DNA of 64,000 bases from Podarcis bocagei (Eukaryota): NCBI GenBank assembly GCA_964188305.1, contig OZ076890.1; one strand, given 5' to 3'. The translations under genes were made by a program, and so were the position numbers. Shown here piece after piece: positions 2,926 through 31,219 of this stretch. Numbering within the stretch: position 1 is the first letter of the stretch; each line of letters opens with the position of its first letter. The notes beneath the pieces are model-generated. The model had not been told where the DNA came from. It ran no database searches and saw only the letters and a program-made list of their open reading frames with translations.

Positions 2926-3307
2926 AGTAGTAGTAGTTTGGATTTGATATCCCGCCTTTCACTCCCTTTAAGGAGTGTCAAAGCGGCTAACATTCTCCTT
3001 TCCCTCCCCCCCCCCCCCCCACATTTGGAGCATTTCCAAAGAGCCCAGTTACGTTCAGTATTGGCCTACCACCAGTCAGGCTGACTAGAAGGGGCATTGG
3101 TACTGGTCTAATTCTAAAAGTGGCAGCCTTGCATGCCACTGAGCCACAGCAGATGTTGCAGAAAGTGAACTCCCCACCCCACCCATCTTGTCCTGTGTCT
3201 TCTCTGTATATGCATGAACTGCTGGAGCTCTCATCTCTGTGCTGTGAAAATTCAACTGCATTCATTTTGCTTTTTTAAAAACCAAACAACTGTGTGTTTT
3301 CTTGAAG

Positions 3308-3416
3308 ACTCATCTTGGGGATGGTAACTCTGAGCAACATCCTCTCCTCCGTCCTGGCAGGAACTGCCCAGTTCTCAGACCCAGTGATGAAGGTCATGTA
3401 TCAGCAGTTTTCCAAG
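3308..3416 (+). CDS. CBS: CBS exon
   Basis: aag|...|gtaatg, 109 nt; LILGMVTLSNILSSVLAGTAQFSDPVMKVMYQQFSK. Confidence 0.93.
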
Positions 3417-3504
3417 GTAATGTATGCCCAGTACCTGTTTTGGAGTTGCTGCCTAGGGCAAAGGATGAGGATGGGAGATACGGGAAATAAGAGCGAATGC
3501 TGAG

Positions 3505-3625: not shown

Positions 3626-4162
3626 AGGAGGCTGATTTCAAAACACTGGAGATGCCAGGGAATGAACCCGGGATATGAGTATTCTGGGTAGGTTCAAGTA
3701 GGTTGTCGTCTTGAGATCTTGCCTCATTTAAGATGGTTCTGTTGCTGCAGCACTATAGGACAGAGATGGGGATCTGGTGGCCCTTTGGATGTTTCTAGAC
3801 TACAACTATCATTCCTGACCATTGGCCATGCTGGCTGGGGTTGGTGGGAGTTGGAGTCCATCCATATCTGGAGAACCATGGGCTCCTCAGCCTTCCATAG
3901 AGGAAGTAAAACAGAAGCAGGATCCTTCATGCCAAGACACTGCTGGAACATCTTTTCGCCCCCAAGAAAACTGAGGTGGGATGGAGGTCATCTAAGCACA
4001 ACCTCAGAGGGAACAAGGTGTACTTGACATGGAGTGTCCATCTCATACCTTACGTCTTCCATGTGGTTCCAGCAGTATGTCACTATGTGGGACTTTATGT
4101 AAACTTGGTCCTAGATGTCTAGTAACAATTTGATTCACTTTATGTGTGGGACTTTATTACAG

Positions 4163-4247
4163 ATTAGCCTGGATGATACCCTTGGAAAGCTGTCACACAT
4201 CCTGGAAAATGATCATTTTGCTATTGTTGTGCATGAGCTGGAGCAAT
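4163..4247 (+). CDS. CBS: CBS exon, CBS2 motif
   Basis: cag|...|gtaagt, 85 nt; [28 protein letters not shown]. Confidence 0.93.
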
Positions 4248-5080
4248 GTAAGTAGCTTTTCTAGTAAAAATAAAAATGTCATACTACTAATTGTGTGTAT
4301 ATATACATACACACACACACACACACACACACCTACCTAGAGATGACCTAATATACCCTTCAAACCATGAAATAGATATACATGAAAGGCATCACATGTA
4401 TATATTAGTATATTAGTTTACTATTTGTTAATTTATTGCATTTATAGCCCAGCTTTTTCCCAAGGAGCTCAAGGTAGCATTGTAGACGTCTGCAAAGGAA
4501 AGCCTATATGTTTTGGCTTTCCTTTACAGACATCCATGCCTAATATGTGGACACTGGAGGTGGTACCATGTGACTCAAGGGGGTGGGGGCACCACCAGCT
4601 CCACAGCTCTATTTTATGGGCAAAGGCGACTTCGCGTTCGTCTAAATTCCAACAAGCCTCCATCCCTTGTATTTGAGAGATACCCGCAGTTCAGGTTTCA
4701 ATGACCATCTAATGAAGGAGTTCTTAAGCTTAGGATCAACTACACAGGGTGGGAGTGACCTTTCAGGTATGTAGTTTCCAAGCTGCTTGGGGTGGGATTG
4801 TTAACAGCATAAAGAGAGCCCTGTTGCATCAGCCCAAAGGCACCCTGGGCAGCATCCTGTTTTCTCAGTGGACAGCCAGATGCCTATCAGAAGCCCACAA
4901 ATAGGACCCAACAGCAATAGCATCCTCTGTGTTTCCCAGCTACTGACCTCCAGGGCTTTTTTTTATCTGGAACTGAGTTCCAGCACCTCCTTGTCGTGTT
5001 CTGGCACCTCACTGGTGCGTTCCGGCAGTTCTGTAGTGTTGCGGTGCCATCCCCCTGCATAACATTTGGGGTCATGTGGC

Positions 5081-5212: not shown

Positions 5213-5732
5213 CATGTGGCACCTCTGGAAAAAAAGCTCTGAACATAGCCATTGTGGCTAGTAGCCTTTTCTTCTGAGAATTTGTCTAAGCCTTTTTTAA
5301 AGGCATCCTAGCTGGTGGCCATCAATCCTTCCATACTTTAACTGTGAACTGTGTGAACAAGTGCTTCCTTTTGCCTGTCCTGAATATTCCAGCATTCAGC
5401 TTCATTTCATGGCATGGTGAGAGAGAGAGAAAAACTTCTATCTGTCCATCTTCTCAATGTACATAATTGGACAGTGGTATGAAGGAAAAAGTTCCCAGAT
5501 GCCACAAATAAAGTTAACATTTCCTCATGGGCAGGGCTTTCTTTCAGGGGGAACTCAGTTCTGGCACCTCTCAGGTGGGCGCCATTGCCATTCTAAGAGA
5601 ACGAGGGAGATGTTCATGGTGAGATGCAATGCCTCTTTTTCTAGAAAAATAGCACTGCTTGTGGGTTTCCTCGAATGCTACTCTGGAAGCATCAACAGTA
5701 TGTAATCTTCCTTCATTTATGTCTTCTTCCAG

Positions 5733-5905
5733 ACAATGCAGATGGCAGCTCCTTCATGAAACAGATGGTATTTGGTGTGGTCACAGCTGTTGATCTTCTC
5801 AGCTTTGTCACCCCCAAAAACAAGACCCAGGAACGAAGAGATGCGACACTGGAATCAAATTCTTCTGAAAGAATTTTCTCCATGGCAGAATCTGTGGAGA
5901 AATAG
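5733..5905 (+). CDS. CBS: CBS terminal coding exon
   Basis: Polypyrimidine tract + cag|; (Y)NADGSSFMKQMVFGVVTAVDLLSFVTPKNKTQERRDATLESNSSERIFSMAESVEK*; intron phases agree across all five exons; candidate AATAAA at 6303-6308. Confidence 0.93.
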
Positions 5906-7398
5906 CAGAAGACCTTTAAGTATAAGGGTCTGGTTTTGTTTTCGAGTATGGCTTTCTATTTTAGAATTAGCATTGTATTTAGTATAGTATTATACTAGTA
6001 TCTAGTATTTCTATTTTAATTTGCCTGGCTGTTCTTGGTCTGCTATGTTCATGGCTATGCTCACCCTAAATGCCACCAAGGGAAATAATTTGGGATCAGG
6101 ATGATTGGACAAGATCACATACAGTTAAAATAAGTAGCTATTCTGTGATAGCATGTTTTTTTAAAAAAAGATTCTTGGGAGGAAGCAGTAGACTAAATGG
6201 ATTCTCCTGTGAGGTTGCCTTGTTGCCTTGATTTTTATCTGATATTTTGTTGTTTGCATTAACATTGACTGATAAATGCATTTCAAAATCTGCTGGCAGA
6301 GCAATAAAGAAATACTACAGATGCAAAGGCTGCCTGACTTGATTGTAGAACTGACAATAATGCTCTTTGCCTGTACAGGGAAGTGTGAACTCGGACTGTA
6401 CAGATGGATGAATGTTCATAAGCCACCTTTCCCCCAGAGAAAGCCTTCCTGCTGTTATGGTTGACTGCTGGAGGTGTATGCTGCTACATCTCACTGCTGC
6501 ATCAACCTCTTAGAACATTCTTGACCATGAAAGGTTCCTGGGCATAGGAGACCATGTGCATACCAATGGTTACTACCTCTAAGAATCTGACAGTCATAGA
6601 ACTGCCATAGCAGGGTGAGGCTGAAGGAGATCTGATTCTGGTACAGATAAACACAGCTACATGTTGATGACTTCTGTAGCCTACCTCTGAATTTGGGGAA
6701 ATACACATAGTCACGATAGGTGAGTCCCAAGGGCCAGATACAGATACTTGGATGACCACATTTGCCCCCTGGTCTGAGGTTCCTCATACCTGCCTTAAAA
6801 GAACTACCTATGAAGCACAATAGAGACTAGATTACCTCAATCTAGACCCCAAAATTAGTTGCAATTAAGTCCCATTGAGAATAATTTCTATCTGCCTTCA
6901 CATCAAATGGAAATTTGAAAGCAGCTTTATAATTACATTTAACAGACCTTTCTTTCAACCCAAGGTGTTATATTTGGTTCATAATGGTAACTCTCCCCCC
7001 CCCTCCCAATGTAGCAGAAAACAGAACAGATGATTTTAATTCTGCAGAAGTTCATAAAGCAGAGCAGTAAACAGTAGACTTGCACTCTTAAGTGCATAGC
7101 ATCAGAACTACTTAGCTATATAAGTAGCTTTCTGTCTTTGAGTAGACTGGAGAAACGGGGGCCGTGATCTACTTCCCGTTGCTCAGTCCACCTTTTTGTG
7201 AAGTTGAGGAACTTCCTTTAGCAGAAAGAAGGCTGAATTCAATAGCTATACTGGCCATTGTGCACCTTTTCACCTGCGATTTGTCTGTACCTTTTTCCTT
7301 TTTTGGTATGTAGTTTCTCCTAACCAAGCACTTACCTTGTGAACAAAGATGGAGGTTTAAGATGCTCTGAACAACCTGCTGTGCATGTGTAAGCCAGC

Positions 7399-8322
7399 AT
7401 TTATCAACGACTTGGATGATGGACTCAAGGGCATCCTGATCAAATTTGCAGATGACACCAAACTGGGAGGGGTGGCTAACACCCCAGAGGACAGGATCAC
7501 ACTTCAAAACGACCTTGACAGATTAGAGAACTGGGCAAAAACAAACAAGATGAATTTTAACAGGGAGAAATGTAAAGTATTGCACTTGGGCAAAAAAAAT
7601 GAGAGGCACAAATACAAGATGGGTGACACCTGGCTTGAGAGCAGTACATGTGAAAAGGATCTAGGAGTCTTGGTTGACCACAAACTTGACATGAGCCAAC
7701 AGTGTGACGCGGCAGCTAAAAAAGCCAATGCAATTCTGGGCTGCATCAATAGGAGTATAGCATCTAGATCAAGGGAAGTAATAGTGCCACTGTATTCTGC
7801 TCTGGTCAGACCTCACCTGGAGTACTGTGTCCAGTTCTGGGCACCACAATTCAAGAAGGACACTGACAAACTGGAACGTGTCCAGAGGAGGGCAACCAAA
7901 ATGGTCAAAGGCCTGGAAACGATGCCTTATGAGGAACGGCTAAGGGAGCGGGGCATGTTTAGCCTGGAGAAGAGGAGGTTAAGGGGTGATATGATAGCCA
8001 TGTTCAAATATATAAAAGGATGTCACATAGAGGAGGGAGAAAGGTTGTTTTCTGCTGCTCCAGAGAAGCGGACACGGAGCAATGGATCCAAACTACAAGA
8101 AAGAAGATTCCACCTAAACATTAGGAAGAACTTCCTGACAGTAAGAGCTGTTCGACAGTGGAATTTGCTGCCAAGGAGTGTGGTGGAGTCTCCTACTTTG
8201 GAGGTCTTTAAGCAGAGGATTGACAACCATATGTCAGGAGTGCTCTGATGGTGTTTCCTGCTTGGCAGGGGGTTGGACTCGATGGCCCTTGTGGTCTCTT
8301 CCAACTCTATGATTCTATGATT
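7399..8322 (+). mobile_element. 5'-truncated CR1 LINE (ORF2 RT C-terminal part + 3' UTR), young copy
   Basis: Uninterrupted ORF FINDLDDG...KFADDTKLGG...LYSALVRPHLEYCVQFW...stop at 8248; ends in CR1 terminal ATTCTATG repeats. Confidence 0.96.
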
Positions 8323-9462
8323 AGATCCCACTGCAAGGAGAAAAGGTTCACCCACGAAACATTCAACCACATGTGAGGTTTATAACTGGATTCCACTGTA
8401 GATTGGTTGGGGATGGGGAATGACTGGTCCATACAAGTAAGGAGGCCAGTTGTCAACACTATATGCACATACCTATACGATGCTGACTCAGGAACCTATC
8501 GCAGAGTAGATACGGGTACACTCTCCCCTCCATCTCTCAGTATGGGCAGAAATGCTTATCTGCATCTTGTATGCCACCACATGGGTTTTACTCCATGTGA
8601 AAGTAGTTGTATAAAACATCCATTTGCACGCATGCATCTCTGGACTGAACCCACCAATGGACTGTTCCAATGTAAACATTTCCCATGCATGAAAATTCAG
8701 ATATTTTAAAATGAAGGTCACTTAATGCTGCTCATGTGGATGCTGTTTACAGCAAAATAGCACTACATAATTTTGCCTGGCTAGACAATCAAGACTTCTC
8801 GGAATTAGAAGTTGGCATGCTTATGAATGTGATTCAGAGACGTGGCAGGAATTTATGCAATCATTTTAATGGGAGCTTTAACTACGTCTCTAAGTACGCA
8901 CGTGAAAATCGGTGACATCGCTGACAGAGTGCTCCTTACAATGGTAGCAACACCGCAATAGCCAGGTTAATTAGAAAAGCCTTTTGTATTGCTGGCTGTA
9001 CGCAAACTAAAGATAATTACACGTGTTCATTCATTGTGCAATATGTGAACAGATATTCCCTTTTGTGTTTCAAAAAATGCTGGCTCTTATTTTCACTGGA
9101 TATCCTGTTAATTTTTTATTCCAATGTATTAACAGTTCAATACTCACCAACACATTCCTCTCACAGAGCTACAAGTCCCAGAGTTCTCTGGGAACAGAGA
9201 CTGACTGTTAAACCACTTTGAGAATTGCAGCTCTATGAGGGTAATAGTGGTCTTTGAAGAACTCTCAGCACCCTTAACAAACTTCTATTCCCAAGATTCT
9301 TTGGGGAAAGCCATGACTGTTTAAAGTGGGACTGTACAGCTTATATGTATCATGTAGACTTGGCTAGGCTCAGAGAGTTTCTTTATAGGCTAAACCAGAC
9401 AGTATAAGAAGAATCACATAAGGAAAATGGGATGAAAGTATAGATGGTGGTTTTGTCATGTA

Positions 9463-9710
9463 CAGGGGTCAGCAAACTTTTTCAGCAGTGGGTCGGTCCA
9501 CTGTCCCTCAGACCTTGTTGGGAGGCCGAACTATATTTTTTTTTTGGGGGGGGAGAACCAATTCCTATGCCCCACAAATAACCCTGAGATGTATTTTAAA
9601 TAAAAGGACACATTCTACTCATGTAAAAACATGCTGATTCCCGGACTGTCCGCCGGCCGGATTTAGAAGGCGATTGGGCCGGATCTGGCCCCCGGACCTT
9701 AGTTTGCCTT
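9463..9710. mobile_element. hAT-type MITE (family shared with 45552-45795)
   Basis: Starts CAGGGGTCAGCAAAC; internal sequence closely similar to the 45552-45795 copy. Confidence 0.8.
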
Positions 9711-10480
9711 AGCCATGTAGTTTGGCCGGATCAAAATCACCATGATTATTATCAGAATTGCTGCACGCTTCCTCAATGTCTGCTATTTGCAGAGGGATCA
9801 GTTGGAGCTTCCCTCCATTTTGAATAGAAGGCATTGGGGAGTGATTACAACTGGGAGCATGGTGGGGCCAAAAGTTTAGAGGCTCCTTCCTTCATGCCAC
9901 CGTCCAGGACAGCCTCACCTGCTCCATTGTGCAGGGCCAACTAGAAGACAAACGCCACGTCTTGCTTGACCCAAGGTCATGAGACAAGCTCATTTCTCCC
10001 TCATCCAGGCAATCTTTTGTTATTCAACCCAGTCACAGGAAAGGGGCAAATGTTAACTAGATAACTGGAGGGAAGGGCATGGTGTGAGGTCTGCAGTTAA
10101 AATAGGAACATGCTTAGCAGGTAGAAGCAGATTTTAAGCAGGTTAGCCTACATTTTTCCTGTGAGGTAAGAAATGAAAAAGTCATTGCTACCTTGTCGTC
10201 TGGCAATTATTGCCCATTCTAAACTGTGGACTGATGTGTAATTCCACGTGTACAAAATGTTAAAAAGTTGTTGTGGAATGGCAGGCTATTCTGAAGAAGA
10301 TAAATGCCAGTGCATTTGTAATGTGCCAACCTGCATCTTGCCTCATCCCTTGCTGCTCAGTAAGCAACAGTGACCCAGCTGCCAGGAACCAAAGATAGCA
10401 GCTCCATGCCACCCATTGAGCCACTTCCACCCCTCTCCCCCGATAAAATGAGGATAGTAAAACCTACTTCTTAATCAAGG

Positions 10481-10506
10481 CCTTATATGGGTAAACCCTT
10501 ATATGG
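10481..10506. promoter_or_regulatory. Tandem perfect CArG boxes (CCTTATATGG x2)
   Basis: CC(A/T)6GG at 10481-10490 and 10497-10506, produced by a 16-bp tandem duplication, ~350 bp upstream of the TATA box. Confidence 0.45.
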
Positions 10507-10847
10507 GTTAAAAAATGGAGACAAGATAAAGCAAATTTGGACCTGCTTGGCAAGGGTTTAAGGAACTATGGAATAGTAAACAAGGGACAATTAAGGTAAC
10601 TATAGTTCTGTATAGTTACAGGATGTACTTACATTAAATTTAAGACACTTTCTTATATAGATAAATAGAGAGGATCCCAGCTGTTAGAATGCAAATTGTA
10701 TATTCTTTCTGTTTACATAATATGGAATATAAAAACTCTTTTGACAATAAATAATACTATAATAAAAGACCCACTGGTAATAAATTAGAAAGGGCTCTTA
10801 GCTCCTCCCAGCTGTTCAGGTTTATGGGTTTTCCCTCTGCTGTGACA

Positions 10848-10857
10848 TTATAAATAG
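10848..10857 (+). promoter_or_regulatory. TATA box of the novel secreted-protein gene (overlaps a MEF2-like YTA(W)4TAR)
   Basis: TTATAAATAG, with TATAAA at 10849-10854, ~90 nt upstream of the donor CAG|GTAAAC at 10944. Confidence 0.7.
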
Positions 10858-10877
10858 CATACCTTCCAGCTGAACAG

Positions 10878-10944
10878 CTACTGAGGAAATATCACTACCT
10901 GGGGACCAAACCACTTGCAACACCCACACCTGAAGCCTATCCAG
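10878..10944 (+). other. Predicted non-coding exon 1 of the fibulin-2-Na-like gene (5' end approximate)
   Basis: Begins ~25-30 nt after the TATA box, has no ATG, ends at ccag|gtaaac; matching acceptor ctttgcatttgatccag| at 11599, 4 nt before the ATG. Confidence 0.6.
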
Positions 10945-11197
10945 GTAAACTAAAGCTATTTCCCCTTTTCATAGATCAGCTAAGCATTTGACCCAATGCA
11001 TTCCCCTTTATTATCATGGAATAAAGTTAGAAATGCTGACTGCATCTGAAGGACAGTTTGCTGTTTTTAAGAAATAGAAAGAGCTGCACAAGATCCTTCC
11101 TTCCTTCTGCAGTAATAGGTTTTTGACAGAATGTTACCAATTTTTAGCACTCCTCAAATTTTATGAGCTAAGGCTTGGAAATTTGATACATTTTATA

Positions 11198-11237
<40 letters not shown>

Positions 11238-11603
11238 TACACACAACAGCAGGAACGAGGCCCAAAGGGGTTGTAAGTGGCACTTCCTTGAACAAGTGGT
11301 CCGAGTATCATCGGAGGCTGGAGAAGGCAACTATCAGGAGCAGCATGTTGCTTTGAAGGCAATCCATTGGGAAGTGTACCCTGAGCTCCAGTGTGGCTGA
11401 TTCTGTGAGCCAATCCGCAATGTGCTATGTAATCAGTGTTTGTGCCCCTGGTGTGAGAAAATGCTATGTAAACTGGTGTTCTACTGAGAGAGGGCATTAG
11501 CTCTGTATTTAAAAAGGCAAAGTTGGGCGAGATAATAGAAAGCAATGAATGAGCAAAAAATGCTATGCTGCTAAAAGGACCTCTTTGCATTTGATCCAGA
11601 GTA

Positions 11604-12113
11604 ATGAAGCCTAAGCACTTCCTCTGCCTGCTGCTGAGCTGCTGCTTCCTACAAAATGGTGACTGCAAGCGTCACAGGCCAGACTGTGCTGCTGTTCTCT
11701 GCCTAGCTTGTCCTGACAATCACAAAGCTGTGACCCGTAAGGACCAGTGCTGTCCGCGCTGCATCCCTCAGTGCAAGTGCCCTGCGTTTCTGAAGGAAGC
11801 TTGTATCCAGGAAGGCTATGAAGATGGGATCCTTCTCCTGGGACAGTCTGTGATTATTGACTTTGGGACCCGAAAGTGTACCTGTGGAGAAGATCATAAC
11901 ATTGTCTGCGCTTCCACTTGCCCTAAAATTTCTCCAGCTTGCAAGTATATAGGAAGACCCCAGGATGGCTGTGGAATGTGCGCTTGTCCCACTGATGATG
12001 AAAATTTTGTACCTGCTGGTGAAGTCATTGAAAGAGAATGTAAAATTTGTAAGTGTCCCCCAAATGGGGGGCAGCTTCAGTGCACCTTAACCTCTAAATG
12101 CTCGCTAGGGTAA
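11604..12113 (+). CDS. Secreted cysteine-rich protein; stand-alone homolog of the fibulin-2 N-terminal Cys-rich (Na, VWC-like) subdomain
   Basis: 169-aa intact ORF; signal peptide MKPKHFLCLLLSCCFLQNGDC; 22 Cys in the mature part; motifs CCPRC, GQSVIIDFGTRKCTC and CKICKCPPNGGQLQC align with fibulin-2 CCATC, GQSYFVDFGSTECSC and CRACHCPDAGGELIC (recalled sequence); G at -3; AATAAA cluster ~12334-12352. Confidence 0.85.
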   Translation: MKPKHFLCLLLSCCFLQNGDCKRHRPDCAAVLCLACPDNHKAVTRKDQCCPRCIPQCKCPAFLKEACIQEGYEDGILLLGQSVIIDFGTRKCTCGEDHNIVCASTCPKISPACKYIGRPQDGCGMCACPTDDENFVPAGEVIERECKICKCPPNGGQLQCTLTSKCSLG

Positions 12114-15100
12114 AAAGTACCCTGTATCATGGGAGCTGGGTGGTGGTAGTTCCATAGCATTACTAAATAAGCATCCTGGTGTTTTAGGGAATACAGTAGT
12201 AGAATTTTAGCTTTGAGAGGGACCTTGAGGGTCATCTAGTTCAGTGCCAGAATCTTAAAGCTACATCAGCTCTCATGAATGTCAATGAACTTTTCCTAAG
12301 AATTAAAGAGTTACATAATCTATGGTATTATTTTAATAAAAATAATAATAAAGACTGGAGTTTAAATATGTTTGGATCCTTACTTAAATCATTATTTGGT
12401 TGAGGCAAATATAGGAAATGCTTGGAATTTTGAAAAATAACTGTGATAATAATGGTTAATAACATATTATATTCATAAATGAGGAAACCTTGGCATACCC
12501 AAATGGGATGCAATTGCTAAGTGGCACCATTAATTGGCTTTCTGTAAAAGCAAAAATGGCAAGGTTTTATGGTTTGGGATATTTTGATTATTATTTTTTG
12601 CAATCATTGTTATGCCCCAACCCAGTGAGGGGAGTCATAACTAGTATGTATTCTCACTCTTCACATTATCTACAAAAGTACAGTGTATAAATTGCTTCGG
12701 TATAATGAAGTTCTTCTCCCTCCGTCAAAAATACTAGAACTTGGCATCAAATGAAATTTCATTGTCTGGGAATTCTGAAGCAGCAAAAATATGTCTCCAC
12801 ACAACACAGAATTCATTTATGCAATTCATTCCTAAACGTTGTAGTGATTATCATTAGCTTAAAGGGCATTAGAAGCGGATTAAACAAATTCATGGAAGAC
12901 TTATCTATCAACAACTGTTTTGAATAATGCTAAATGGGGTCCTTACGTTAGGGATGGGGCACCTGTGGCCCCCCAGATGCTACAGAAGTCCATCTCCTAG
13001 TGGCGAGGATACTCAAGAGTTCGTTGCATTTCACATATGCTAAAGTGAACAGCGAAGCAATCAGCACTATAGTGGCACCTAGAGACAGTAAGCAAGTATG
13101 AAATCACTGACAAAGGGAGACAGCACCTCACCCACCATCCATGCATTCCATTCAATGAGAGAACACCAGGAAGAGAACTACCAAATGCTTGTGGGCAAGA
13201 TATCCATGTACAGAACTGCAAAAAAGCAGCTGCACATATTGAATGCATGCACTCATCTTAAAGCTGCTACTTATGCATCCTGCTTCTGAGTTAACAAAAT
13301 GGGATCATAGCAACACGAAAGACTACAATCCCCCCCCCCTTTTTGGTTTCCAATATGGGCTGTTCTTGGCTAACTGGATTGTTTTTATTACAATACAAGG
13401 GGGACTATGACACCCTGCTCTTATATACTCTTATGCTCTTCCATATACTGCACTTATATACTCCTCTCCCCGACAATCCCTCCACAAGACACTTGCTTGC
13501 TGAATCAAGAAATCATCCCAGCGTCTCCCTTCTGTTCTGAAGTCTGCACGTGTTTTCAACATCACCCCCAAGTCCATGCCTTCTTCTCCCCTTTCCTTTT
13601 CCGCAACCTCCACCTTGTTCACAGACCAACTCCAGGGTCATCTCTCTTTTATGCCCCTGCCCTGCCTTCATGAAAATCCAGGATGCCACAGATCCCCCAG
13701 TTGGGTCAGCACGGTGATGGAGTAGTGCAAATATAGTATTACAATATTAAACAAGCTATCTATGACAAAGAAATAAAATTTTAAAAGCAAGAGTATTTGA
13801 TTCTCAGTGCTGCATCTGCACAAAGGTTCAGTAAGCAGTGACTCTCAAGTATCTTAGTAACAGGCCCCATAAGAGTATTTTGTTCCAATATTTTATCCAC
13901 ATAGCTACTACCATTTCTCTTGGGAGTCAGTATTCTACAAATATTGTGCCTGAAATCATACACAATTACCAGGTGGTGTCATTAAACTCACTGGGGCTTA
14001 ACTTCTGAGTTAAGCATAAGATTGCCCTATTATGATCCTAACTGGAAATTTTAAAAAACTAGCTTGGGATGGGATAGGACCTTCTAAATGGTCTTTTTAA
14101 AGGACTTAAAAGTTTGATATCTCTTTCACTTTTATTTCAGAACAACAAAGAGAGAAGATATTTTGAACTAATTCATTGCATAGCTTTTCGTTAAGCTTGT
14201 CTACAGTTAAAAACACAACATTCCCAGATCAGTAAGAATGTTGCATTTTTGCTCCTATAATCTAAATAATGACTTGTGTAAAGAATCATGCAAAATATTT
14301 TCCAACTTAAAGACCTGGGGAAGGATTTCTAAACAAAACTGATGTACAAAAGAAAAACAAAATTGATATCTGCATTATAGAGTATTGAAACAGGAACACA
14401 GTAATGTGACAATTGACCTTAATTAAAGCAATGTGAAACTTTACTTTTAAAACACAAAGTGAAGAAATCATGCTTTGAGTTCAGAGGTTTCATGTAAAAC
14501 ACATTGATGAATCATAATTATTTTGCCATGCTGGTTCAAATATTTCATTAAATGACAAAACAAACTGAACAACTAGGTTTATCAGAGTTTAGATTTTAAA
14601 GATTGTCAGTTATGAAGATAAAATATTTCCTGATACAACTGAAGACATGTTTTTTCTCTCTGCCAAAATACATAGACTCTAACAAATGGGAAGTACCCAA
14701 AACATAAGGATTAGATACTATAACTTTTTTTAGAAATGGGGATCCAATGACTTATTTTGCAGACAAAACCCATAATCATTCATCCTACGTAGGTTATGGA
14801 CCTCAAAGTCTAGCGTGCTTTCCTTTGTATTTCCTGCATCAACAAACCAATATTTAAATATGCTATAAAGTCTACTTTGTGTAATGCTGTTATCACAGGC
14901 AGACAAGCACTTGTAAAAGCAGTTGTCATTGACCTTTATAATAGCCACAATCCAAAGAAGTGGGCATATGAATGAGTTGTAACCACACACACAGTCAAAA
15001 GCCTTTTCTAGTTGTCACTGAAGCAAAAGTCTCCTCAAAATGTTAAACAAGTTTAAGAAAATGTAATTTGGGTTTGGTAAACACAATCTACTTCCACTTG

Positions 15101-21252: not shown

Positions 21253-21870
21253 CTAAAATGACCAAAAATGAATCTTATGAAGACATCCGTAAAATCAGAC
21301 TCTCTATACCCAAGCCCAGTGCTAAGCAGGATCACACACACACACTTGGCTGATACAAAGGGAGTATGATTCTGCTGCCTTTGGGTGTGGTAGAGAGTTC
21401 CCTGCAGGGAGCTTTCTGGCATACTGAAATTCAGTGCTTAGCAGAATCGCCTGCCTCCACACAACATTAGTCAAAGTGAAGGGAGGGTGATTCTGCTTGG
21501 TCCAGGTGCTCCTTGTTTCTCCTGTCCTGTCAAAGGAGAGGAGTGGGGAAACAATCACTTTGCCAGCCCTTTGTTCAGATCTTCCCAAAGCACAGAACGT
21601 GAGCCTGATAAAGTGGTACCAAAATGCAAATCCTGCACAAGGTATTCTCACAGCTGGGCAGGACAACACACCTGTCAATCATGTGGCATACTCACTTGTC
21701 AAGGATGATTCCAGTAAGGATCTGGCCCATGACCACCTCTGCCCTACATCAATCCCGTCCAGTTTTAGCTTTACATAGCAGCCCAAAGGAAAATGCTGTA
21801 TATTTCTATGTGACTTTTCAACATAGGTGAATTTTGTAACACAAAAAGTGGCAAATTCGTTGTATCTTAC

Positions 21871-21947
21871 CAGTTGTTAACCTGAAGTAATGTTAGATTG
21901 GTTTGTGCTGCTATCTGTTTTTTCTCATCCTCTGTTGGATATGGATG
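21871..21947 (-). CDS. PKNOX1: PKNOX1 exon, TALE homeodomain
   Basis: 77 nt; HPYPTEDEKKQIAAQTNLTLLQVNNW (PYP TALE loop). Confidence 0.97.
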
Positions 21948-23318
21948 CTACAGACAGGAAGGGGGATGGAAAAGTTATAAGAACTTGCTAAAGATATGCA
22001 ATAAGCACAATACAAAAATCTGCAACCATAAAGCAAAGGGAATACAATTTAGTGTGGGATTAATTCTATGCTAATTAGATAATTTCTGACCAGATAAACT
22101 AATTTTTGACAACACACGTCACAATGATTTCATATGTGTAGATTGAAATTTTCATTGTTTTATGTAATATGTTGATTTTATGACACCGATTACAGATAAT
22201 TATTTATTACTCTAATAATGAAAGGAACATTATTCTTTAGACTCCTACTTCTGTGAACTTAAAATACTCACTGCTATTACAAAAACCAACGCATTCTCAT
22301 CCCTAGTACTCCAATTTCTATAGTCTCTGGCGCTAGTTCCCAGAAAAAAAATATTCACAGGTAAGGAATTGAAAAAGACTGCAAGGGAAAGGAAATCTAC
22401 AATAACTTCAAGGATTCTGTCACCTGCAGGGATCTCCATACTCTTTTTCCTCTGTACTTTTTTAAAAAAACCTTTAGTCTCAGTTTTTTGTTGCTATATT
22501 AACTTTTATGAAATCATAAAATGAACTAGCCAGTTTCCCCCAGATGTAATGAATGCATTTTTTCCCCAGAATTCTCACAGAAAATTTAAATTCCCTATCT
22601 TTTCAGCATAATAGCTGGCAGACCAATCTTTGCTGATATCCCTGATCGATTGACAGTTACTGGCCCAGTTTAGGCATAACTGATAAGACAATTAGTAATT
22701 GGGTGAAATATAAACTGAGATTATTAAAATGCTTAGCACAGTAACAGAAGAAGTAGATAGTAAACTGTCAAGCATTTATTATTTAAATGGGTGCAATAAA
22801 AAATTCCCTCCCAGGAAAAAAAGAAGGCAAGTGCTAGCTTCAGAACATCTTTAACCTAGCTCTGTGCAATTCTAATATCCAGTGAAGTCATGAAACCTAA
22901 AAGAAAGCCAGAAAGGACTTCAACATCAACCTTCAAATGATAACCAGGCTGACCACTACATTATTTTTTAAAAAGAATTAACAATATAACTTTATCCTTA
23001 AATGTCCATGTGGGGGAGGGGATTATTCTCCCAGCTGTCCTTGCTAGATGGCATGATCCTTGGGGAACACAGCATGTGATAAAGCTGGATTTATCACATT
23101 GTGTCATATGGTAGGGATAAAATACCGTGTGGAGTTAAATAAAAGCATTACCAGTTAAAAATCTACAAGAGAAACATAGCTATTTCTAGTACTATCTATA
23201 ATGTACTTAGTATAGTAATTCTAGTAATTTATCAGGAACTGTTAAGAATTAATACAAACCCATTTTTGTCTCCTTGTAGTTTCATAAGATGTTATGCAGT
23301 ACAGTTCAAAAGGGAATA

Positions 23319-23666
23319 AGGTAAAGGGACCCTTGACCATTAAGTCCAGTCGTGGCCGACTCTGGGGTTGTGGTGCTCATCTCACTTTATTGGCCGAGGG
23401 AGCCGGCGTACAGCTTCTGGGTCATGTGGCCAGCATGACTAAGCCGCTTCTGGCGAACCAGAACATCACACAGAAACGCCGTTTACCTTCCTGCCAGAGT
23501 GGTACCTATTTATCTACTTGCACTTTGACGTACTTTCGAACTGCTAGGTTGGCAGGAGCAGGGACCAAGCAACAGCAGCTCACCCTGTCGCAGGGATTCA
23601 AACCGCCAACCTTCTGATCGGCAAGTCCTAGGCTCTGTGGTTTAACCCACAGCGCCACCCGTGTCA
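23319..23666 (-). mobile_element. Sauria SINE, near full length
   Basis: Characteristic Sauria SINE body (ggtaaagggaccc...gtcatgtggccagcatgact...ttaccttcc...cagcgccacc); 14-bp TSD TTCAAAAGGGAATA at 23305-23318 and 23667-23680. Confidence 0.9.
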
Positions 23667-24453
23667 TTCAAAAGGGAATACTGGATCACATATTACATTT
23701 AGCCATGCAGAAAGTTCAAGTTATTTTAATACCTTTGGATGAAGCCACCAGCACTGGTAGCTTGTTACATATATTGCTCTATTTGCTAGAGCTGAAAATA
23801 CTGCTGCCCAAACAGTACAATTTGAGGGGGCTGAGTATAATAAATTTGATCACGAGTACATGGACTGTGGAGCATTCCTGTTGAGCGTTCCTCCCCCACC
23901 TCCAAAAACATACAGCCAAAGGGACTGAATTCTTTACAAAAGTACATATAACATGTGAATTAAGAAGAAAACCTGTAAAAACTTTTGTCTGACCTTTCAG
24001 ATCATAACGTAACTTACTATGCATGTAGGTATTACAGGAAACATGTGTGACCCTAAGCTAACAAGGCCCCTTTTGAGAGTGTGGAGTGCATTTAGTACAG
24101 CAATCTGCACAAAGAAACATGCTACTGCATTCTAGCCCCCTAGGAACTGGTTCAGATTAACAGAGATATAAATATATCCCTCAAAGGACTACTGTTCAAG
24201 GGAGCACAGGATTAAAAAAAATCCTCAGCATGATGTAATAAAACCAAAAATATCTCTAAAATTTAAGATCACAAGGTTATATAATAGACATCCACTGAAT
24301 TTGTGCCTGATTCAACTCTAATATACCAAGTTAATATATTCTGAGTAGGTAGTTAAAAGCTTCAGATTTTGCCAAAACATTTTCCCCTCATGCAGATACC
24401 AGCAGAAATTATCAGAATAGTAGTGATTCCCAAATCACTGTGATCAACCTTAC

Positions 24454-24582
24454 CCCTATGTGCTGAAAAAGCCAAGACCTCATCACATTTGTAGCATGCT
24501 TTGGAAGAACTCCTCTTTTATTTTTTGATGACCCGTCATCTTGATGCAAGATGCTTAAATCTTGGTTTAATTGTAACTGGAG
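24454..24582 (-). CDS. PKNOX1: PKNOX1 exon, homeodomain N-terminus
   Basis: 129 nt; LQLQLNQDLSILHQDDGSSKNKRGVLPKHATNVMRSWLFQHIG. Confidence 0.97.
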
Positions 24583-24684
24583 CTGCACAGAGATTCAGAA
24601 GTAGCAGGCAGTTACTAACACACCATAATATTACCATGTTTTTTTAAATATTTCACTAAAAAATGCTTATAATATAAAACAAAC

Positions 24685-24782
24685 CTGTGAATTCTGGATC
24701 CTGATGGTTCCAGGTGACAAAGCTTGTGTCACTACTTGACCTTGAGGTGTGACCACAGTCACTGGCTGATACACCGTACCAC
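24685..24782 (-). CDS. PKNOX1: PKNOX1 exon
   Basis: 98 nt; GGTVYQPVTVVTPQGQVVTQALSPGTIRIQNSQ. Confidence 0.95.
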
Positions 24783-25542
24783 CTTAAAAGAATATTATAG
24801 CAATATTACACTACAGCAAACATTTTCATATAGATGTCATTAAACAAAGAAAACAATAAACTATTTACACAACACACAAAACTTACTTTAAAACTTCGCT
24901 ATAATTTTACATAAGCTTGTTGTATTTTTTTAAAAAAGAATAGACAATTGCATCTGATTCACCTTTCCATACAGCCATTATTGTGAAGATGCTAGGCCAG
25001 TGGTTGCATAATAATTTGTATTTGAATAATATAAAATAATAATGTTTTCATCAGCAGCCATTACTATTATTATTTATTAAATTTGCATACTGCCCTTCAT
25101 CCAAAGATCCCAGGGATATTCACAACAGAAAAATAAAAAATGAGGATACAAAAAACTTAATAAAACAAACATTCCACATGGCTACTTCAATAGGAGAGCT
25201 ATAAACATGGCCCATTTCATTGGCTTGGCTCCCTCCCTCCCATAACTGTCTGCTTCAGTCAACCTGGTCATTTTATCAGTTATTTTGTATGCATTTGTAA
25301 TGAATCTTCTCATTTTCCTCATCCTTCCCCATCCTCCTCCCCCCCCATTTTTACACCATGCCAACCTGCTTATATGCCATTATTTTAAATTGTAAATGAC
25401 CTTGACTGCACAGGCAGAAAGGCGGCATATAAACATAGTAATCAAAAAATCATCTCAAGAATTCCTTTTCTTAGTCACTTAACAGACACAAACTACATCT
25501 ACGATGAGTGCAGTGTTTGCATTTTTATTCAGTGCTTCCTAC

Positions 25543-25642
25543 CTGCAACGGTTGCCATAGTTACATTTCCCTGCTGCAAGGCTGATGCAGGTACCATAAT
25601 CCCCTGGGGACTGAGCGTACCTGTGATGGCACTTTGAATTGG
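25543..25642 (-). CDS. PKNOX1: PKNOX1 exon
   Basis: 100 nt; PIQSAITGTLSPQGIMVPASALQQGNVTMATVA. Confidence 0.95.
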
Positions 25643-27766
25643 CTAGAAATAGTAAACAACAAAAATTACATGAACTTATAACAAAGGATGCTCCTGTCAC
25701 TTTAAGTTGAAATGGTACTGTACCAAATATGAGATGTTCAAAACATAAACCCGATGAGGATAATGATGATGTCATCACTACCAACCAGTATGATCAAAAA
25801 CAGTGATGAAACTAGTATGAGAAGGAAATTCAATGAAAGGAGGTGGTAAATAACCTAGATATTTCAGTTTGACAGTATGTTGCATTTATATTTGGTTTTC
25901 CAAGTGTGGGTTTTCTTCTCCACATTGAACCACCTATCAGAATATAGAACAGATATGCAAATTCTGGATCAGAAGTAACCCAGCTGACAGTGCTTATCCC
26001 GTTTAATATTAGGCTAGTCACATGCTACTGTAATCAAAGTGCTTGTAAAAGAGACAATTGATAAATTTTAGTCAATGCACTACATACTTAGGAATTGTTA
26101 TTCTACAATAATTTAGAATATCCCAACATTTCTTTTTAAAAAAGGTTATGCAAATATGCTTATGGCTGCAACCCTATTACCTGGAAGTACGTCTTACTGA
26201 ACTCATTGGGACTTCAGAATAGACTTGTTTAGAATTGTGTTATAAGTAAAAAAACATGGCAACCACATGTACAGTCAGAATATATATAACACTGTATTGT
26301 TGGGGATGAAATTCTAGCCCTTCTAAAGTTGATGCTAGAAAAATGCATGAATCCTCACAATTAAAGATGGTCAATAGTTCATTGTTTTCCACAGGAAATG
26401 TAAAGTTTCAAGCACTTAAAATTTGAACTTTTTGGATCTTTTGCAAACTTAAAATTTATCTGATTTATTGAGGTATAAGCCAAAACTACAGGTAAGTCTA
26501 GATGACAATGCAATTTACAATTAGTACATTGACATGGGGCTGGCATGATGGATGTAATGAAACACAATGAAGAAGTTCAAAAACATACACCAGTATCTCA
26601 ATACTAATCGTGATAAACTTAATTTATGCCATGGAACTTGTGAGCAGATGTTGTCTGACTGGCTTCTAGGAGAGCTCTCATGGTATGAATGGTGAATGGA
26701 GCCATATGCTAAAGTTTTGAGAGGTGTGCTCTGAAATTATAGCAATTCTGATGGCATTTTGACTTATGTTCAAGGAAAAGATAGGGAATGAGCAAGATAC
26801 GAAATTATCTACCAACTTCTGTTCCTCCAGTTACTAGCAATTCAATTTCGAAAAATATAATACTTCTGTGTAGCAGTTGATTTTTTACACTTTCCAATAA
26901 ATTAAACAAAACAGAGGGCCTGCATGGACACATTTTTCATTATAGGTGTTATGTATCGGAGGGCCCATAGCTCGCTGGTAGAGCAAATATTTCCCAAATG
27001 GTTCCAGGCTTAAAGTCTGGTATCTCCATGAAAGGATATAAAGTATCAGGTACCTGAGGCCTTATAACAGACTCTGCCAAACAGAGCAAACAATTCTGAG
27101 TCCAAGAGATCTGAATTCATATAACACAGCTTTTGGGCCCTTATGTGCATGGAATGCAGGCTGTGGGATGTGAGGAGCTTTATTTTATGTCCTGAAGCCT
27201 TGTGTATGTGATGAGAGAGCAATCACAGAACCCTATTTCTACATACAAATCACCACTTGCTGGGATGGGGCCATTATCTACAATGAGATGAACAAAGCCA
27301 ACCCCCAAATTAGGCTAAGGAGGTAGTGCCAAAGAGGTGCAATGATAATCGTGTCATTTTTGCTCTACTGCTCACATTTTCTGGTGACTCTTTCCATGAA
27401 GACAGCTGCTCCAGCAAATCCAAGCTATCTCTATCATGTTTAAAGTTGCTGGACTGCAGACAAAGAGTTGATAGATTATGATCATTCTTTAAGAATTGCA
27501 TTTCCATGTACGTGACTACTAAGAAAAAGGGAGATCTTATAATCTTAACAATATCACAAAACCTTAAAAACTGCTAGCTTGCCAGTCACAGATCATCTAT
27601 TTGTAAATTGCATGGTTTACAAATTCAACCAATATTAACATAGTAATTTATATTTTATCTGCTCTTTGTTTGTTTTAAAAACTAATCTTACCTATCCTGA
27701 GTCTTTGGGATAATGTAGATTATAAATCAAATAAAGAAAATATATTTCAGTTAGCATGAAAGGTAC

Positions 27767-27937
27767 CTGGGGTTGTACAGGTGAATAAGGACTCCCAGAT
27801 TCTCCACTTAGCAGAGTTTCACTGTTCATTTTCGTTTTCAGACAGGCAATATAGCGACTACAGAAATCCTTACAGAGCTCGTTAACTTTTTCTAGCTCAA
27901 GCAGATGAATTCGTAGAACCTGAATTGCCTTTACCAT
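27767..27937 (-). CDS. PKNOX1: PKNOX1 exon, MEIS-B/HR2 PBX-interaction region
   Basis: 171 nt; MVKAIQVLRIHLLELEKVNELCKDFCSRYIACLKTKMNSETLLSGESGSPYSPVQPQ. Confidence 0.97.
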
Positions 27938-28778
27938 CTAAAAGAGGGAAAAGAGAAAGAATTCAGAGACAAGTAAAAAACCAATGAAAACAAACATTTG
28001 CATATGTCATTTACAGTGTGCTAAGTTGTTCAATATATGTTTGAGCTACTTTTTTGCTTATTTTCAACAGGGCAGTTTATAATTATTGTTGCTTTCTCCT
28101 ACCCAGATATTGTCTCAATGTAGGAAACTATGTACACTGTTAATTGCTTGCACAAAACTGGGGACTGCCCACAGCATGTATAGGCTATATAAATGCATTT
28201 TTCTACACAGATCTGATTTGTGCAGATTATTATGTATGATGCAGCCCTCCTATTTAGCCCACCTTTTCCATTTTTCTTCTTGAACAAGGCTACAAGTTTC
28301 AAATGAATAACATGCAGAGATTTTCACATACCCAACTTCCTTATGATAAGTAGTTGAGCTGATCAGAAATAGCAATATGCATTATCTTCAAGTGTCAACT
28401 CAAGTACAATCAGATGTGCATTTGGCACAAAGCCAACCACTCAATTTATTTTACTTGTTAAGAAAATGCAGCCTCAGAGTGGCTTACACTTACGGAATAA
28501 AAATACAATAATAAAAACATAAAATTACAAGATGATGCAATCTACAATCAGTGGCAGATGAAAAAATGGGAAATAATCAGGAGTAATCAACACTAATAGC
28601 AGAAAAGGCATAAAAGAATAAAAGCTCTGAGTAAAAAGGAATCACAAAGAGCACAATGAAAATCCACTTGCACAACAGGACTTCTGGTTTCTCATCTTTA
28701 TCCACTGCAGCTGCCCACGTGCCCAAGAATCTTGAGCGGATTTTGAGGCTGTGTGGAAGGATAGAGGAAAGTAGAAGC

Positions 28779-29107
28779 CAGGGGCGTAGCTAGCTGCTCC
28801 GGCACTCGGAGCGGCGGGAGCGAGGCGATCCACCCAGGGGCGCTGGGTGGTGATCTGCCCAGGGGGGAGGCACAGTGAGCTGCCCACGGAGTCTGCCTGG
28901 CGGGCGCAAGTCCTACGCTGCCATTTCAGGCAGCGCGCAGCCCAGAGCCACCACGTCACTTCCAGGAGAGACGCGTGGCCTGGGCGCACTGCAGGCCAGG
29001 CCCTGTGGTAAGTGCCCCCCCCGTGGTGTGCCATTTTATCACCCCCTCAGGGATGACACCCAGGGTGGTTCGCACCCTCCCCCGCACCCCCACTTCCTAC
29101 GCCCCTG
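28779..29107. mobile_element. hAT-type MITE, GC-rich
   Basis: TIR CAGGGGCGTAG...CTACGCCCCTG; perfect 8-bp TSD GTAGAAGC (28771-28778, 29108-29115). Confidence 0.9.
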
Positions 29108-29814
29108 GTAGAAGCCATATTCCACAAATGGATGTTCACACAAAGGAGAGAGTTCAATAAGCAGACTGCATCTCTGAATGGGTTCTTTGCGTGGTCACTA
29201 CCTGCCCCATATCAGAAGGCAGTGGCACCAGGAGAAGAGCCTCTGGAGATAAGCTCAATATTCAGGCAGCACCTCAATTGCCAGAATCAGCAAGCACAAA
29301 ATATCATGAAGTTTCCACTTAAGGAACTACATGCACAGCAAAGAGCCAATCAGGGTTCTTTCAAGCAACCATATTAAATCAAATGGTTTGTTGAGATGTA
29401 AACCACAAATCCCAGCTGGGTGGATGGGGAGAGAGGAGGAGAATGGAAAGAATTGAGGAAGTAGTGGAGGAGGACAGCAAATTAAATGCAAACAACCAAA
29501 ACCCTACACATAAGAACATCTGACTCACTGGAAAACATATTGATATGTCAAAAGAGTCTCATGAAGCAGACAGATTAACTACAAACAAACAACTATCTAA
29601 AAAAAGAAGCTAGCCAAGTTGATAATTTGCTATGTGATGGAGGAGCTTCTGTCAGTAATACTGACAGGGAATGTCTGCTGCTACCAAGGGCTGTAAATTT
29701 CAACTTCTTTAAGTTGACATTTCACAATTCAGTTTTCTCAGTATCAATTTACTTTTTTCAAATATAAAGATTTTATAAATAAATTGAAATCTTATCTAAA
29801 ATGTTTTTACTTAC

Positions 29815-29986
29815 TAGATTATCTGTTTCCGGATCTTCACAAAAAAATGGTTTTCCTTCCTTCTCCTGCTTCCTAACAAAGTTTTCAATATCTACATCAA
29901 AACTTGCAGACGTTGTGCCTTCTGAGCCTTGTGTGGATTGTTCACATTTTTCAAATAATAGTGCTAATAAGGGGAACAGTGGATGT
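29815..29986 (-). CDS. PKNOX1: PKNOX1 exon, MEIS-A/HR1 region
   Basis: 172 nt; HPLFPLLALLFEKCEQSTQGSEGTTSASFDVDIENFVRKQEKEGKPFFCEDPETDNL. Confidence 0.97.
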
Positions 29987-31219
29987 CTAGGAATAAAAAG
30001 ACAAGCAAATTGTAGGTTTGTGGAAATATCTATGTGCAAATTAGTTTGATGAAAAATTCTGAGCAATCTGGACATTGCATACATACAATCCTATTATTTT
30101 AGATTATTACATTAGTATTACATTTAATGTAATAAAGTTACATTAGCAATTACTATGCTAGGTTCAGAACTGAATATACTGTGATCTCCCTTATTTGCTC
30201 TTTTTTTTAGCATGGATCAAATACTGCTAATTATAGAATCATTTAAATATCAATGTCATCCCACAGTTTGATGTACCGTAAATGATACTGATGGGTAGCT
30301 TGTACTATTGGGTCTCACTTACATTTTTATTAAGCTTTGCTCAAATAAAGACCCTAAAAAGCCTGAAATTTAATACAATTGTATGTTTTAAAATAAAAAA
30401 TAATCTAGTAGGGATGCCATTCTTTATTTTCTTAGATTGTAACGATGTAGCTCTAACAGAAAGCAAGTTTAGACAAATATATATAACTAAATACAAAGAC
30501 AATAAAAAGCTTTGCCCTGAGACGCAGGTCACAATCCTGAACACTTAAGTATGTTCAACGCCAACAGAAGTTAGCAGAACTTACTGCACAAGCCTTCTGT
30601 CCTCAATAGGGCTTAGTCTCTTGTAAATGTATAGATTTCAGTCTTAAGCATGAAAACATGTATTAACCATCTCACAGTAATTAGAAAACCCCAAATGTAT
30701 GAACTTCTTGACAAATTACAATACACTGGCTGATTTAAGCTTAGGCCTCCTCTTCTAAACTTATTCAACTTTCTGAGTCCCCCAACCTATCACCAACCTC
30801 CCCAGCTGCACTGATATGTGGAACAAACTTTGGTCTAGGCACTAATTCAATACTGGTATTAGGAAGGGAAAACTGAACAAGTTATATTTGACACCTCCTA
30901 AAACCACAAATAGGAAAACAGCATTAGTTCAAAGTAGCACCTTTTCCCAAGTCAATGAATGGGGGAGCAGTTGCCCCTACAAATCTAATGAGGATATTCT
31001 AGAGAACCCCACTCCCACCCATGGCTTGGCTGGTGAGGGGGGAAAGATGCATCAGCCTCAAGATCTTATCATGTCTAGAACAGTGTGTGCCCCCTTCCAC
31101 ATGTTCCATGTCTCCTGCATACACAAGCACCACCCCATGATTTGAGAACCACCCATGACCTACTAAAGAGAATGATACATTTTACTGCTAGAAACAGCTC
31201 ATCTTGTGAATACTGCTAC

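Follow-up and report, generated by a model that had tools for sequence, protein, structure and literature searches.

Full-length fibulin-2 (FBLN2) comprises an N region (Na plus Nb), three anaphylatoxin-like modules, an array of calcium-binding EGF-like (cbEGF) modules and a fibulin-type C-terminal module, about 1000-1250 amino acids (aa) in all. To our knowledge, the Na sub-domain has no settled function and its partners are poorly defined. The 408-residue N region has been described in a review as unique to fibulin-2 (PMC6977632). Here we analyze a gene on contig OZ076890.1 of the lizard Podarcis bocagei, within a 64,000-nucleotide (nt) stretch that we call the window; all coordinates are window positions unless another contig is named. 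The gene encodes a 169-aa protein that resembles Na and ends where Na ends. We consider it very probable that this is a real, expressed two-exon gene, an old Na-only paralogue of FBLN2 that has been conserved and whose product would be a secreted, soluble extracellular binding module.

Other described proteins also resemble it. The small secreted proteins VWC2/Brorin and VWC2L consist of disulfide-rich VWC/FnI-like modules, as this protein is predicted to do; together with VWC modules from NELL1/2, CCN3, chordin-like proteins and collagen IIA, they are its nearest neighbors by fold and language-model features. Its sequence kinship, however, leads to FBLN2 Na rather than to these families, with no significant match to PF00093, PF23334 or PF23331. 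Finally, RefSeq holds short proteins called 'fibulin-2-like' that share its length class, its cysteine scaffold, its site behind CBS wherever that can be read and its layout of a splice acceptor before the ATG, and that fall with it in one clade; they differ in being automatic models with a name derived from similarity only.

Gene structure, splicing and transcription

The gene is laid out on the plus strand as follows.

10849..10856, plus strand: TATA box TATAAATA of the gene's promoter, read in the sequence
10880..10944, plus strand: exon 1, a non-coding, ATG-free 5′ untranslated region (5′ UTR), from X2 and X4 contigs; start approximate, transcript evidence from 10885
10945..11599, plus strand: the sole intron, 655 nt, GT..AG, from spliced contigs in two runs of two studies
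11600..12693, plus strand: exon 2, with 4 nt of 5′ UTR (AGTA), the whole coding sequence and the 3′ UTR, from contigs; 3′ end not fixed
11604..12113, plus strand: coding sequence of 169 codons and a stop, with a predicted signal peptide (about residues 1-19/21) followed by a 22-Cys Na-like domain (C28..C166)

Exon 1 holds about 65 ATG-free nt and closes in the sequence as CCAG followed by GT at 10944/10945. The donor GT occupies 10945-10946 and the acceptor AG occupies 11598-11599, at the end of the context GATCCAG. In the list of open reading frames (ORFs), the frame at 11604..12113 (plus strand) is the only long ATG-started one there that makes sense. Poly(A) signals are found at 12302 (ATTAAA), 12335 and 12347 (both AATAAA). 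The intron also contains a (CA)n microsatellite at about 11204-11236, and positions 11194-11248 were left out of read mapping as a repeat.

We aligned three contig sets (X1, X2 and X4) and one raw RNA sequencing (RNA-seq) run (X23) to window positions 8500-13500; the X2 and X4 contigs come from two studies of a closely related species. Contigs of both X2 and X4 carry a single joint, 10938 to 11594, which skips 655 nt bounded by GT..AG and, with the cut moved by +6, equals 10944/11600. The X2 contig (depth 74.8) has 47 letters on the exon-1 side and covers 11594-12187, the X4 contig (depth 57.6) has 54 letters on that side and covers 11594-12693, and an X1 contig covers 11871-12296. Depth within the intron was 0 in X2 and about 3 in X4, compared to exon depths of 75 and 58. 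The longest spliced contig, that of X4, begins at about 10885, some 36 nt past the start of the TATA box. Because the contigs hold 47 and 54 letters of exon 1, transcripts begin at or before about 10885. The gene is spliced and transcribed as predicted.

An earlier sequence-only reading of the locus had described it correctly in nearly every detail. The TATA box that it placed at 10849 is there; its short ATG-free exon with a GT donor after 10944 and its acceptor 4 nt ahead of the ATG (11599/11600) agree with both the sequence and the joint in the contigs; and its intact 169-codon ORF and downstream AATAAA signals are present. The 10944-11600 junction, which it had named as the one to look for in RNA, was found in transcript-like contigs from two runs of two studies. 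The gene end that it gave, 12352, needs correcting: the X4 contig of a relative extends as far as 12693, so the true 3′ end need not be at 12352 and could be farther along.

Homology to the Na sub-domain of fibulin-2

The protein's relationship to FBLN2 emerged from an exhaustive phmmer search of 1.8 billion representatives. The search returned 38 matches, which were short orthologues and mainly the N-termini of longer proteins. The short proteins (n = 7, 127-208 aa) matched with E-values from 4e-53 to 4e-12, while the longer ones (E 3e-9 to 7e-4) aligned query residues of about 20-166 with their own residues of about 25-175. By Pfam, these longer matches are fibulin-2: they carry PF24532 FIBL-2 at 62-71 bits and, where the fragment is long enough, EGF_CA/cEGF. 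Their VWC scores (PF00093, 21.8-27.1 bits) lie just under the cut-off of 27.6. A word-indexed search additionally found a Podarcis lilfordi protein that is 98% identical, called 'hypothetical' at NCBI and 'VWFC domain-containing protein' in UniRef, together with less similar relatives (56-61% identity), among them a protein of the agamid Phrynocephalus forsythii.

Direct comparisons gave the same answer. BLASTP against the FBLN2 of Phrynocephalus (P0138) aligned 149 aa at 28% identity (E 1e-17), and hhalign of 10 short proteins against 12 FBLN2 Na domains reached a probability of 99.8% over 142 columns (E 5.2e-28). FBLN2 Na (P0138 residues 42-192) likewise has 22 cysteines; their order is common to both proteins, and the alignments require local shifts only at the third Cys and in the CxxCxxxC segment. 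The motif pairs and the 22-Cys register that the sequence-only reading had listed from recall are visible in alignments with real FBLN2 sequences, and its proposal of Na homology is supported by significant results from phmmer, BLASTP and hhalign. On these sequence comparisons, the protein is homologous to the N-terminal Na sub-domain of FBLN2.

The short gene and FBLN2 thus have in common 22 Cys in order and shared motifs over about 142-149 residues, and in each gene a single coding exon encodes both signal peptide and Na. The differences are as marked. As had been read from the sequence, the short protein stops three residues past its 22nd Na cysteine (C166), and it lacks Nb and the anaphylatoxin, cbEGF and fibulin C-terminal modules, having 169 aa and no EGF_CA, ANATO or Fibulin_C match. 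Its gene sits next to CBS, elsewhere in the genome, and the protein is only 28-32% identical to FBLN2 Na, evolves far faster and falls under the PF24532 threshold.

We also considered whether the gene is the full-length FBLN2 orthologue and rejected it, the ORF being only 169 aa without EGF_CA, ANATO or Fibulin_C, and true FBLN2 being separate in squamates (P0138, P0124 and P0166).

The protein and its predicted fold

The N-terminus consists of MKPKH, a basic n-region, FLCLLLSCCFL, an 11-residue hydrophobic core, and QNGDC. An equivalent hydrophobic N-terminus occurs in all aligned orthologues, and the AlphaFold2 model places a helix at residues 3-16 with a low predicted local distance difference test (pLDDT) score. 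Judged by eye, these features suggest a cleavable signal peptide and a secreted protein. The whole chain has 26 Cys: C8, C13 and C14 in the signal-peptide core, C21 near the cleavage site and 22 from C28 to C166. C21 sits where cleavage is likely, and several orthologues do not share it. The earlier count of 22 mature cysteines holds if cleavage falls after C21; cleavage after G19 would leave 23. The 22 conserved cysteines presumably form 11 disulfides. The mature part would have about 148-150 aa, a mass of about 16 kDa and an isoelectric point of about 7, and the 169-aa protein contains no N-glycosylation sequon and no RGD motif.

We compared the AlphaFold2 model, built from an 18-sequence alignment (mean pLDDT 86.7), with known structures. 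Foldseek against the PDB returned VWC-bearing NEL/NELL2, VWF and mucin assemblies, FnI pairs and the VWC module of CCN3. In an exhaustive VIA search, residues 25-108 matched the NELL2 VWC region (Z 6.3, 70 residues aligned) and residues 123-169 matched FnI and VWC modules (Z 3.2-4.1; FnI 3.7-4.1). The CCN3 VWC module (5nb8) superposed on residues 123-169 with a root mean square deviation of 2.3-2.4 over 44 aa. The nearest ESM Atlas structure belongs to a Fibulin-2 cluster (TM 0.46 by query, 131 residues aligned), and the nearest language-model neighbors are VWC2L clusters (cosine 0.90, 181 shared features). Each score is modest; together, they suggest a protein built of VWC/FnI-like, disulfide-stapled modules.

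These neighbors invite the alternative that the protein is a secreted antagonist or modulator of the bone morphogenetic protein (BMP) or transforming growth factor beta (TGF-beta) type, akin to VWC2/Brorin, VWC2L, chordin-like proteins and CV-2 rather than to fibulin-2. Besides the VWC2L clusters among its language-model neighbors and the VWC modules of NELL2, CCN3, collagen IIA and VWF among its structural ones, the UniRef name of the P. lilfordi orthologue and the near-threshold PF00093 score of the equivalent FBLN2 segment are consistent with this alternative. The window protein and its family members, however, gave no hit on PF00093 and no significant one on PF23334 or PF23331, and the sequence homology is specific to FBLN2 Na, for which we know of no BMP binding. 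Moreover, a common fold does not show a common ligand, and the BMP-binding function of VWC proteins cannot be transferred on fold alone. We therefore regard a BMP/TGF-beta modulator as unlikely and continue with the reading of the protein as an Na module derived from FBLN2.

Orthologues and synteny

Using cluster look-ups and a profile search, we found short RefSeq 'fibulin-2-like' proteins of 157-209 aa across tetrapods. The reptile members are from Anolis sagrei (XP_060622884), Lepidochelys kempii (XP_073215566) and Caretta caretta, and at least 12 bird species have one (among them Coturnix, XP_015738923; Lagopus, Numida, Apus, Grus, Cuculus, Columba, Lathamus, Chlamydotis, Empidonax, Parus and Corvus). 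Salamanders contribute a member from Ambystoma mexicanum (XP_069491762) and hypothetical proteins in Pleurodeles. The cluster look-ups and profile search returned no short member from mammals, frogs or fish, which is absence of evidence only. Outside squamates, identity to the Podarcis protein drops to 35-50%.

The genomic position is shared. In Phrynocephalus, Coturnix, Lepidochelys and Corvus, the gene lies directly downstream of a gene with PALP and CBS domains, on the same strand. A pyrimidine tract with an AG 1-5 nt ahead of the ATG occurs in 7 of 8 orthologous contigs (L001-L004 and L006-L008) and is not evident in L005; splicing itself was seen in the Podarcis relatives, and at the other loci the acceptor was read from sequence. 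Orthologues in other tetrapods, for which the sequence-only reading had proposed a search, thus extend over squamates, turtles, birds and the axolotl, with CBS synteny in four genera. The Podarcis gene is orthologous to the short 'fibulin-2-like' genes found next to CBS in squamates, turtles and birds.

Both Phrynocephalus and Ambystoma have a true FBLN2 (P0138 and P0143, respectively) alongside the short gene. In Phrynocephalus the pair is unlinked, each gene being on its own chromosome-scale contig, and FBLN2 spans 175 kb. Such coexistence would permit the short protein to act as a soluble competitor or regulator of FBLN2 N-domain interactions, taking the same matrix partners without cross-linking them. 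The full set of Na cysteines is retained, as are several motifs that go beyond them (G-x-S-x-x-x-D-F-G..C.C, CP.(I/L)PP.C, DGC and CxCPxxGGxLxC), and every other FBLN2 module is missing. Its surface residues, however, are only about 28-32% identical to those of FBLN2 Na and change fast, which would be unexpected if it bound slowly evolving partners, and mammals manage without the short gene, as far as our searches show. On balance, we think such competition rather improbable as the specific role of the Na-only paralogue.

Several individual gene models deserve a remark. Phrynocephalus forsythii has a further copy in tandem, some 6 kb downstream of the intact gene (L001 16095-16571, plus strand). 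It has the identical signal-peptide start MRKPEIFLYVLLSCCFLRNIDC, but contains an in-frame stop (..IQCV*TFHV..) and has lost cysteines; we read it as a pseudogene of recent origin, although an assembly error is possible. In the crow Corvus cornix (L004 10001-10507), the model P0031 aligns in its first half only, and a different frame at L004 10078-10497 encodes the conserved C-terminal half; either the model is wrong or there is a frameshift, be it in the gene or in the assembly. In the turtle Lepidochelys kempii, an uninterrupted ORF with the full 22-Cys domain is present at L003 12996-13514; the RefSeq isoforms X1-X3 (208-209 aa), like the models from Caretta, extend over 7.6 kb and have a different C-terminus, probably by alternative or incorrect 3′ splicing. 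In the newt Pleurodeles waltl, two very divergent Na-like proteins, P0040 (127 aa) and P0079 (225 aa), map to the same 1.58-Gb contig with locus tags that differ by only 7, which suggests several linked copies.

Selection and evolutionary rate

We estimated the ratio of non-synonymous to synonymous substitution rates (dN/dS) with the Nei-Gojobori method. Among five squamate coding sequences, it ranged from 0.19 to 0.37, with dS values of 0.44-2.2 that are partly saturated. Compared with the window, the transcript contigs of close relatives have 8 synonymous against 3 non-synonymous changes in X4 and 5 against 3 in X2. The ORF is intact in relatives and dN/dS lies below 1, the value that the sequence-only reading had said would speak against a functional gene. 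The short gene is under purifying selection.

Nevertheless, the short protein changes quickly. Among squamates it is 55-59% identical, versus 97-98% for FBLN2 Na, and between squamates and turtle or bird it is 38-46% identical, versus 88-93%. The short copy is constrained, yet evolves many times faster than its FBLN2 Na parent.

A fast rate would also be seen in a decaying partial duplicate of FBLN2, that is, a pseudogene or fragment whose frame is open by chance and whose transcription is noise. Copies of this family do sometimes die, as the second tandem copy in Phrynocephalus with its in-frame stop and lost cysteines indicates, and the crow model is seemingly frame-shifted in its second half. 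The remaining data runs against decay. Squamates, a turtle and many birds, whose lineages split more than 250 million years ago, all have an intact ORF, and the invariant or near-invariant alignment columns are almost all cysteines. The dN/dS values and the synonymous excess among close relatives, the recurrence of an acceptor just ahead of the ATG at nearly all orthologous loci and the spliced contigs at depths of 58-75 all disagree with it. Decay is accordingly a very remote prospect, and a constrained, functional paralogue is far better in keeping with these measurements.

The same rate data bears on what kind of function is constrained. The protein could be a lineage-variable secretory product (of gland, reproductive tract, egg or skin) or an immune-type factor, shaped by arms races or species-specific interactions. 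Its rate is many times that of FBLN2 Na, its dN/dS of 0.2-0.4 is high for a matrix protein, and its expression is apparently tissue-restricted, since some runs show it strongly and one not at all. An agamid in which the gene was duplicated in tandem and a copy lost also fits, and the small, disulfide-rich secreted format is typical of glandular, reproductive and immune-type proteins. Strict synteny and 22-Cys conservation over the amniote time-scale, on the other hand, fit a housekeeping extracellular role equally well. As a specific proposal, we hold it to be possible though doubtful; the broader account of a conserved, secreted Na-only paralogue accommodates either kind of role.

Age and origin

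We built a maximum-likelihood tree from 15 short proteins and 18 FBLN2 Na domains from shark to marsupial. The partial 127-aa Pleurodeles row was left out of the main tree for its length (branch 4.99). The split between short proteins and FBLN2 had support of 100/99 and occurred in 99% of bootstrap trees; with the Pleurodeles row kept, its support was 67/80. Within the short clade, the tree followed that of the species (squamates 95/93, turtle plus birds 88/77), and the axolotl fell on the short side. The suggestion of a divergent, probably old paralogue is borne out by CBS synteny in squamates, turtles and birds and by a clade apart from FBLN2. The duplication is no later than the amniote ancestor and probably took place before the amniote-amphibian split, in early tetrapods.

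The origin may be earlier still. Where the short clade attaches to the FBLN2 subtree, branch lengths are near 0 and support is 45-63, values compatible with either a pre-gnathostome or a tetrapod-stem origin.

The sequence-only reading had argued from the 5′ layout of both genes that DNA-level duplication is favored over retroposition. In Lepidothrix, a single exon of FBLN2 encodes residues 1-440, which take in the signal peptide, Na and Nb, and the stop of the short gene corresponds to an exon-internal point in FBLN2. Because the FBLN2 Na region is itself on a single exon, the coding layout cannot separate the two routes; a single coding exon is expected under either. No clear acceptor was seen just ahead of the ATG in Lepidothrix FBLN2, which gives no confirmation of the non-coding first exon ascribed to that gene. 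A DNA-level duplication is possible; the layout does not favor it.

Possible function and significance

Several observations weigh against our account of an expressed, secreted paralogue of FBLN2 Na and should be considered together. First, X2 and X4 are only guessed to be RNA, and no reads over the gene were found in X23, the one certain RNA-seq run. Second, the homology is clear only through phmmer and profile comparison: the single protein has no Pfam, NCBIfam or PDB sequence match even at E 10, and PF24532 is reached by 1 of 10 family members at E 0.016 and by the window protein not at all at E ≤ 10. Third, the structural Z-scores are modest, all below 8, and values below 8 are not decisive. 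Fourth, secretion is predicted from sequence features and the modelled helix. Finally, the axolotl member is placed by the tree, in which its branch is very long (3.8 changes per column), so that long-branch attraction could affect both its orthology and the tetrapod age.

Some of these points have a ready interpretation. The coverage of X2 and X4 is restricted to exons plus a highly expressed repeat, as expected of a transcriptome. The lack of X23 reads over the gene indicates that it is not expressed everywhere. The missing Pfam, NCBIfam and PDB matches reflect divergence and are not evidence against homology.

If our account is right, the TATA promoter would drive a short non-coding leader exon, and exon 2 would supply the whole ORF. 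Removal of the signal peptide would release a soluble Na-only module of about 16 kDa, which may bind a matrix component or a secreted ligand, as other VWC/FnI-type modules do. Because it is without Nb and the anaphylatoxin, cbEGF and fibulin C-terminal modules, the protein could not build matrix itself. The likeliest modes of action would be that of a VWC-type binder of ligand or matrix, a molecule competing for the contacts of the FBLN2 N domain or a secretory product that varies between lineages, and we do not rank them firmly. The fast rate and patchy expression incline us slightly towards a specialized secretory role.

A bolder proposal, which we offer as speculation and think unlikely to be correct as it stands, is that non-mammalian tetrapods keep the Na-only factor as a diffusible ligand trap or competitor of fibulin-2 anchoring, and that mammals and possibly frogs have lost it. 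If true, the factor would give the Na module a directly testable function outside a 1200-aa matrix protein.

The Na module, then, also exists as an independent, conserved and expressed gene in lizards, turtles, birds and a salamander. At about 150 aa, its product offers a natural minimal construct for structure and binding studies of the Na fold, and the gene illustrates paralogy of a single domain, with a copy whose rate of evolution is many times that of its parent. Its presence also corrects the expectation that the interval between CBS and PKNOX1 is gene-free in amniotes. The sequence-only reading had called such a stand-alone gene unexpected. We found no study of a stand-alone Na protein in literature searched by family name and RefSeq accessions; the family is already catalogued in databases under similarity-based names (RefSeq 'fibulin-2-like' and the UniRef name), though uncharacterized, and these existing entries lower its novelty. 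With such models at hand and function so far only inferred, the value of the finding is moderate.

Neighborhood of the gene in the window

The flanking genes were located with tblastn, using the CBS parts of loci L001-L004, and with Pfam.

1249-1353, 2299-2439, 3306-3458, 4118-4252 and 5651-5902, plus strand: the last five coding exons of CBS (tblastn)
21870..30090, minus strand: PKNOX1, convergent and downstream, two exons by Pfam

Pfam finds PALP and CBS domains in the CBS genes of the orthologous loci. On the plus strand of the window, the end of CBS at about 5902 is followed by the start of the short gene at about 10880. Of the PKNOX1 exons, that at 29776-30090 (minus strand) encodes Meis_PKNOX_N (PF16493, E 5.2e-23) and that at 21870-21947 (minus strand) a TALE homeobox (PF05920, E 3.5e-11), whose best PDB match is human PKNOX1 (1x2n, E 1.6e-13; Meis, E 6e-9). 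The placement of the gene between CBS and PKNOX1 was correct, with the 3′ exons of CBS upstream and a convergent PKNOX1 downstream. We considered whether the ORF could be an exon of either neighbor and rejected this; the contigs begin just past the gene's own TATA box and join only 10944-11600, and PKNOX1 lies on the opposite strand.

Two repeats lie between CBS and the gene. A 287-aa ORF at 7385-8248 (plus strand) has a weak reverse-transcriptase match (PF00078, E 1e-4, under the cut-off) and resembles scattered sequences in the quail, crow and agamid loci and at window 39184-39755; sequences of this type are fragments of long interspersed nuclear element (LINE) retroelements, CR1-like. An interspersed repeat at 9168-9835 is very deep in all four runs, up to a word depth of about 87,000 at 9502-9668, with reads that are just 90-95% alike. 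Scans for Rfam families and tRNAs at 9.2-9.8 kb found neither. Many joints here go back about 61-65, and a tandemly variable internal unit is therefore suggested. The repeat is probably an abundant, transcribed element resembling a short interspersed nuclear element (SINE).

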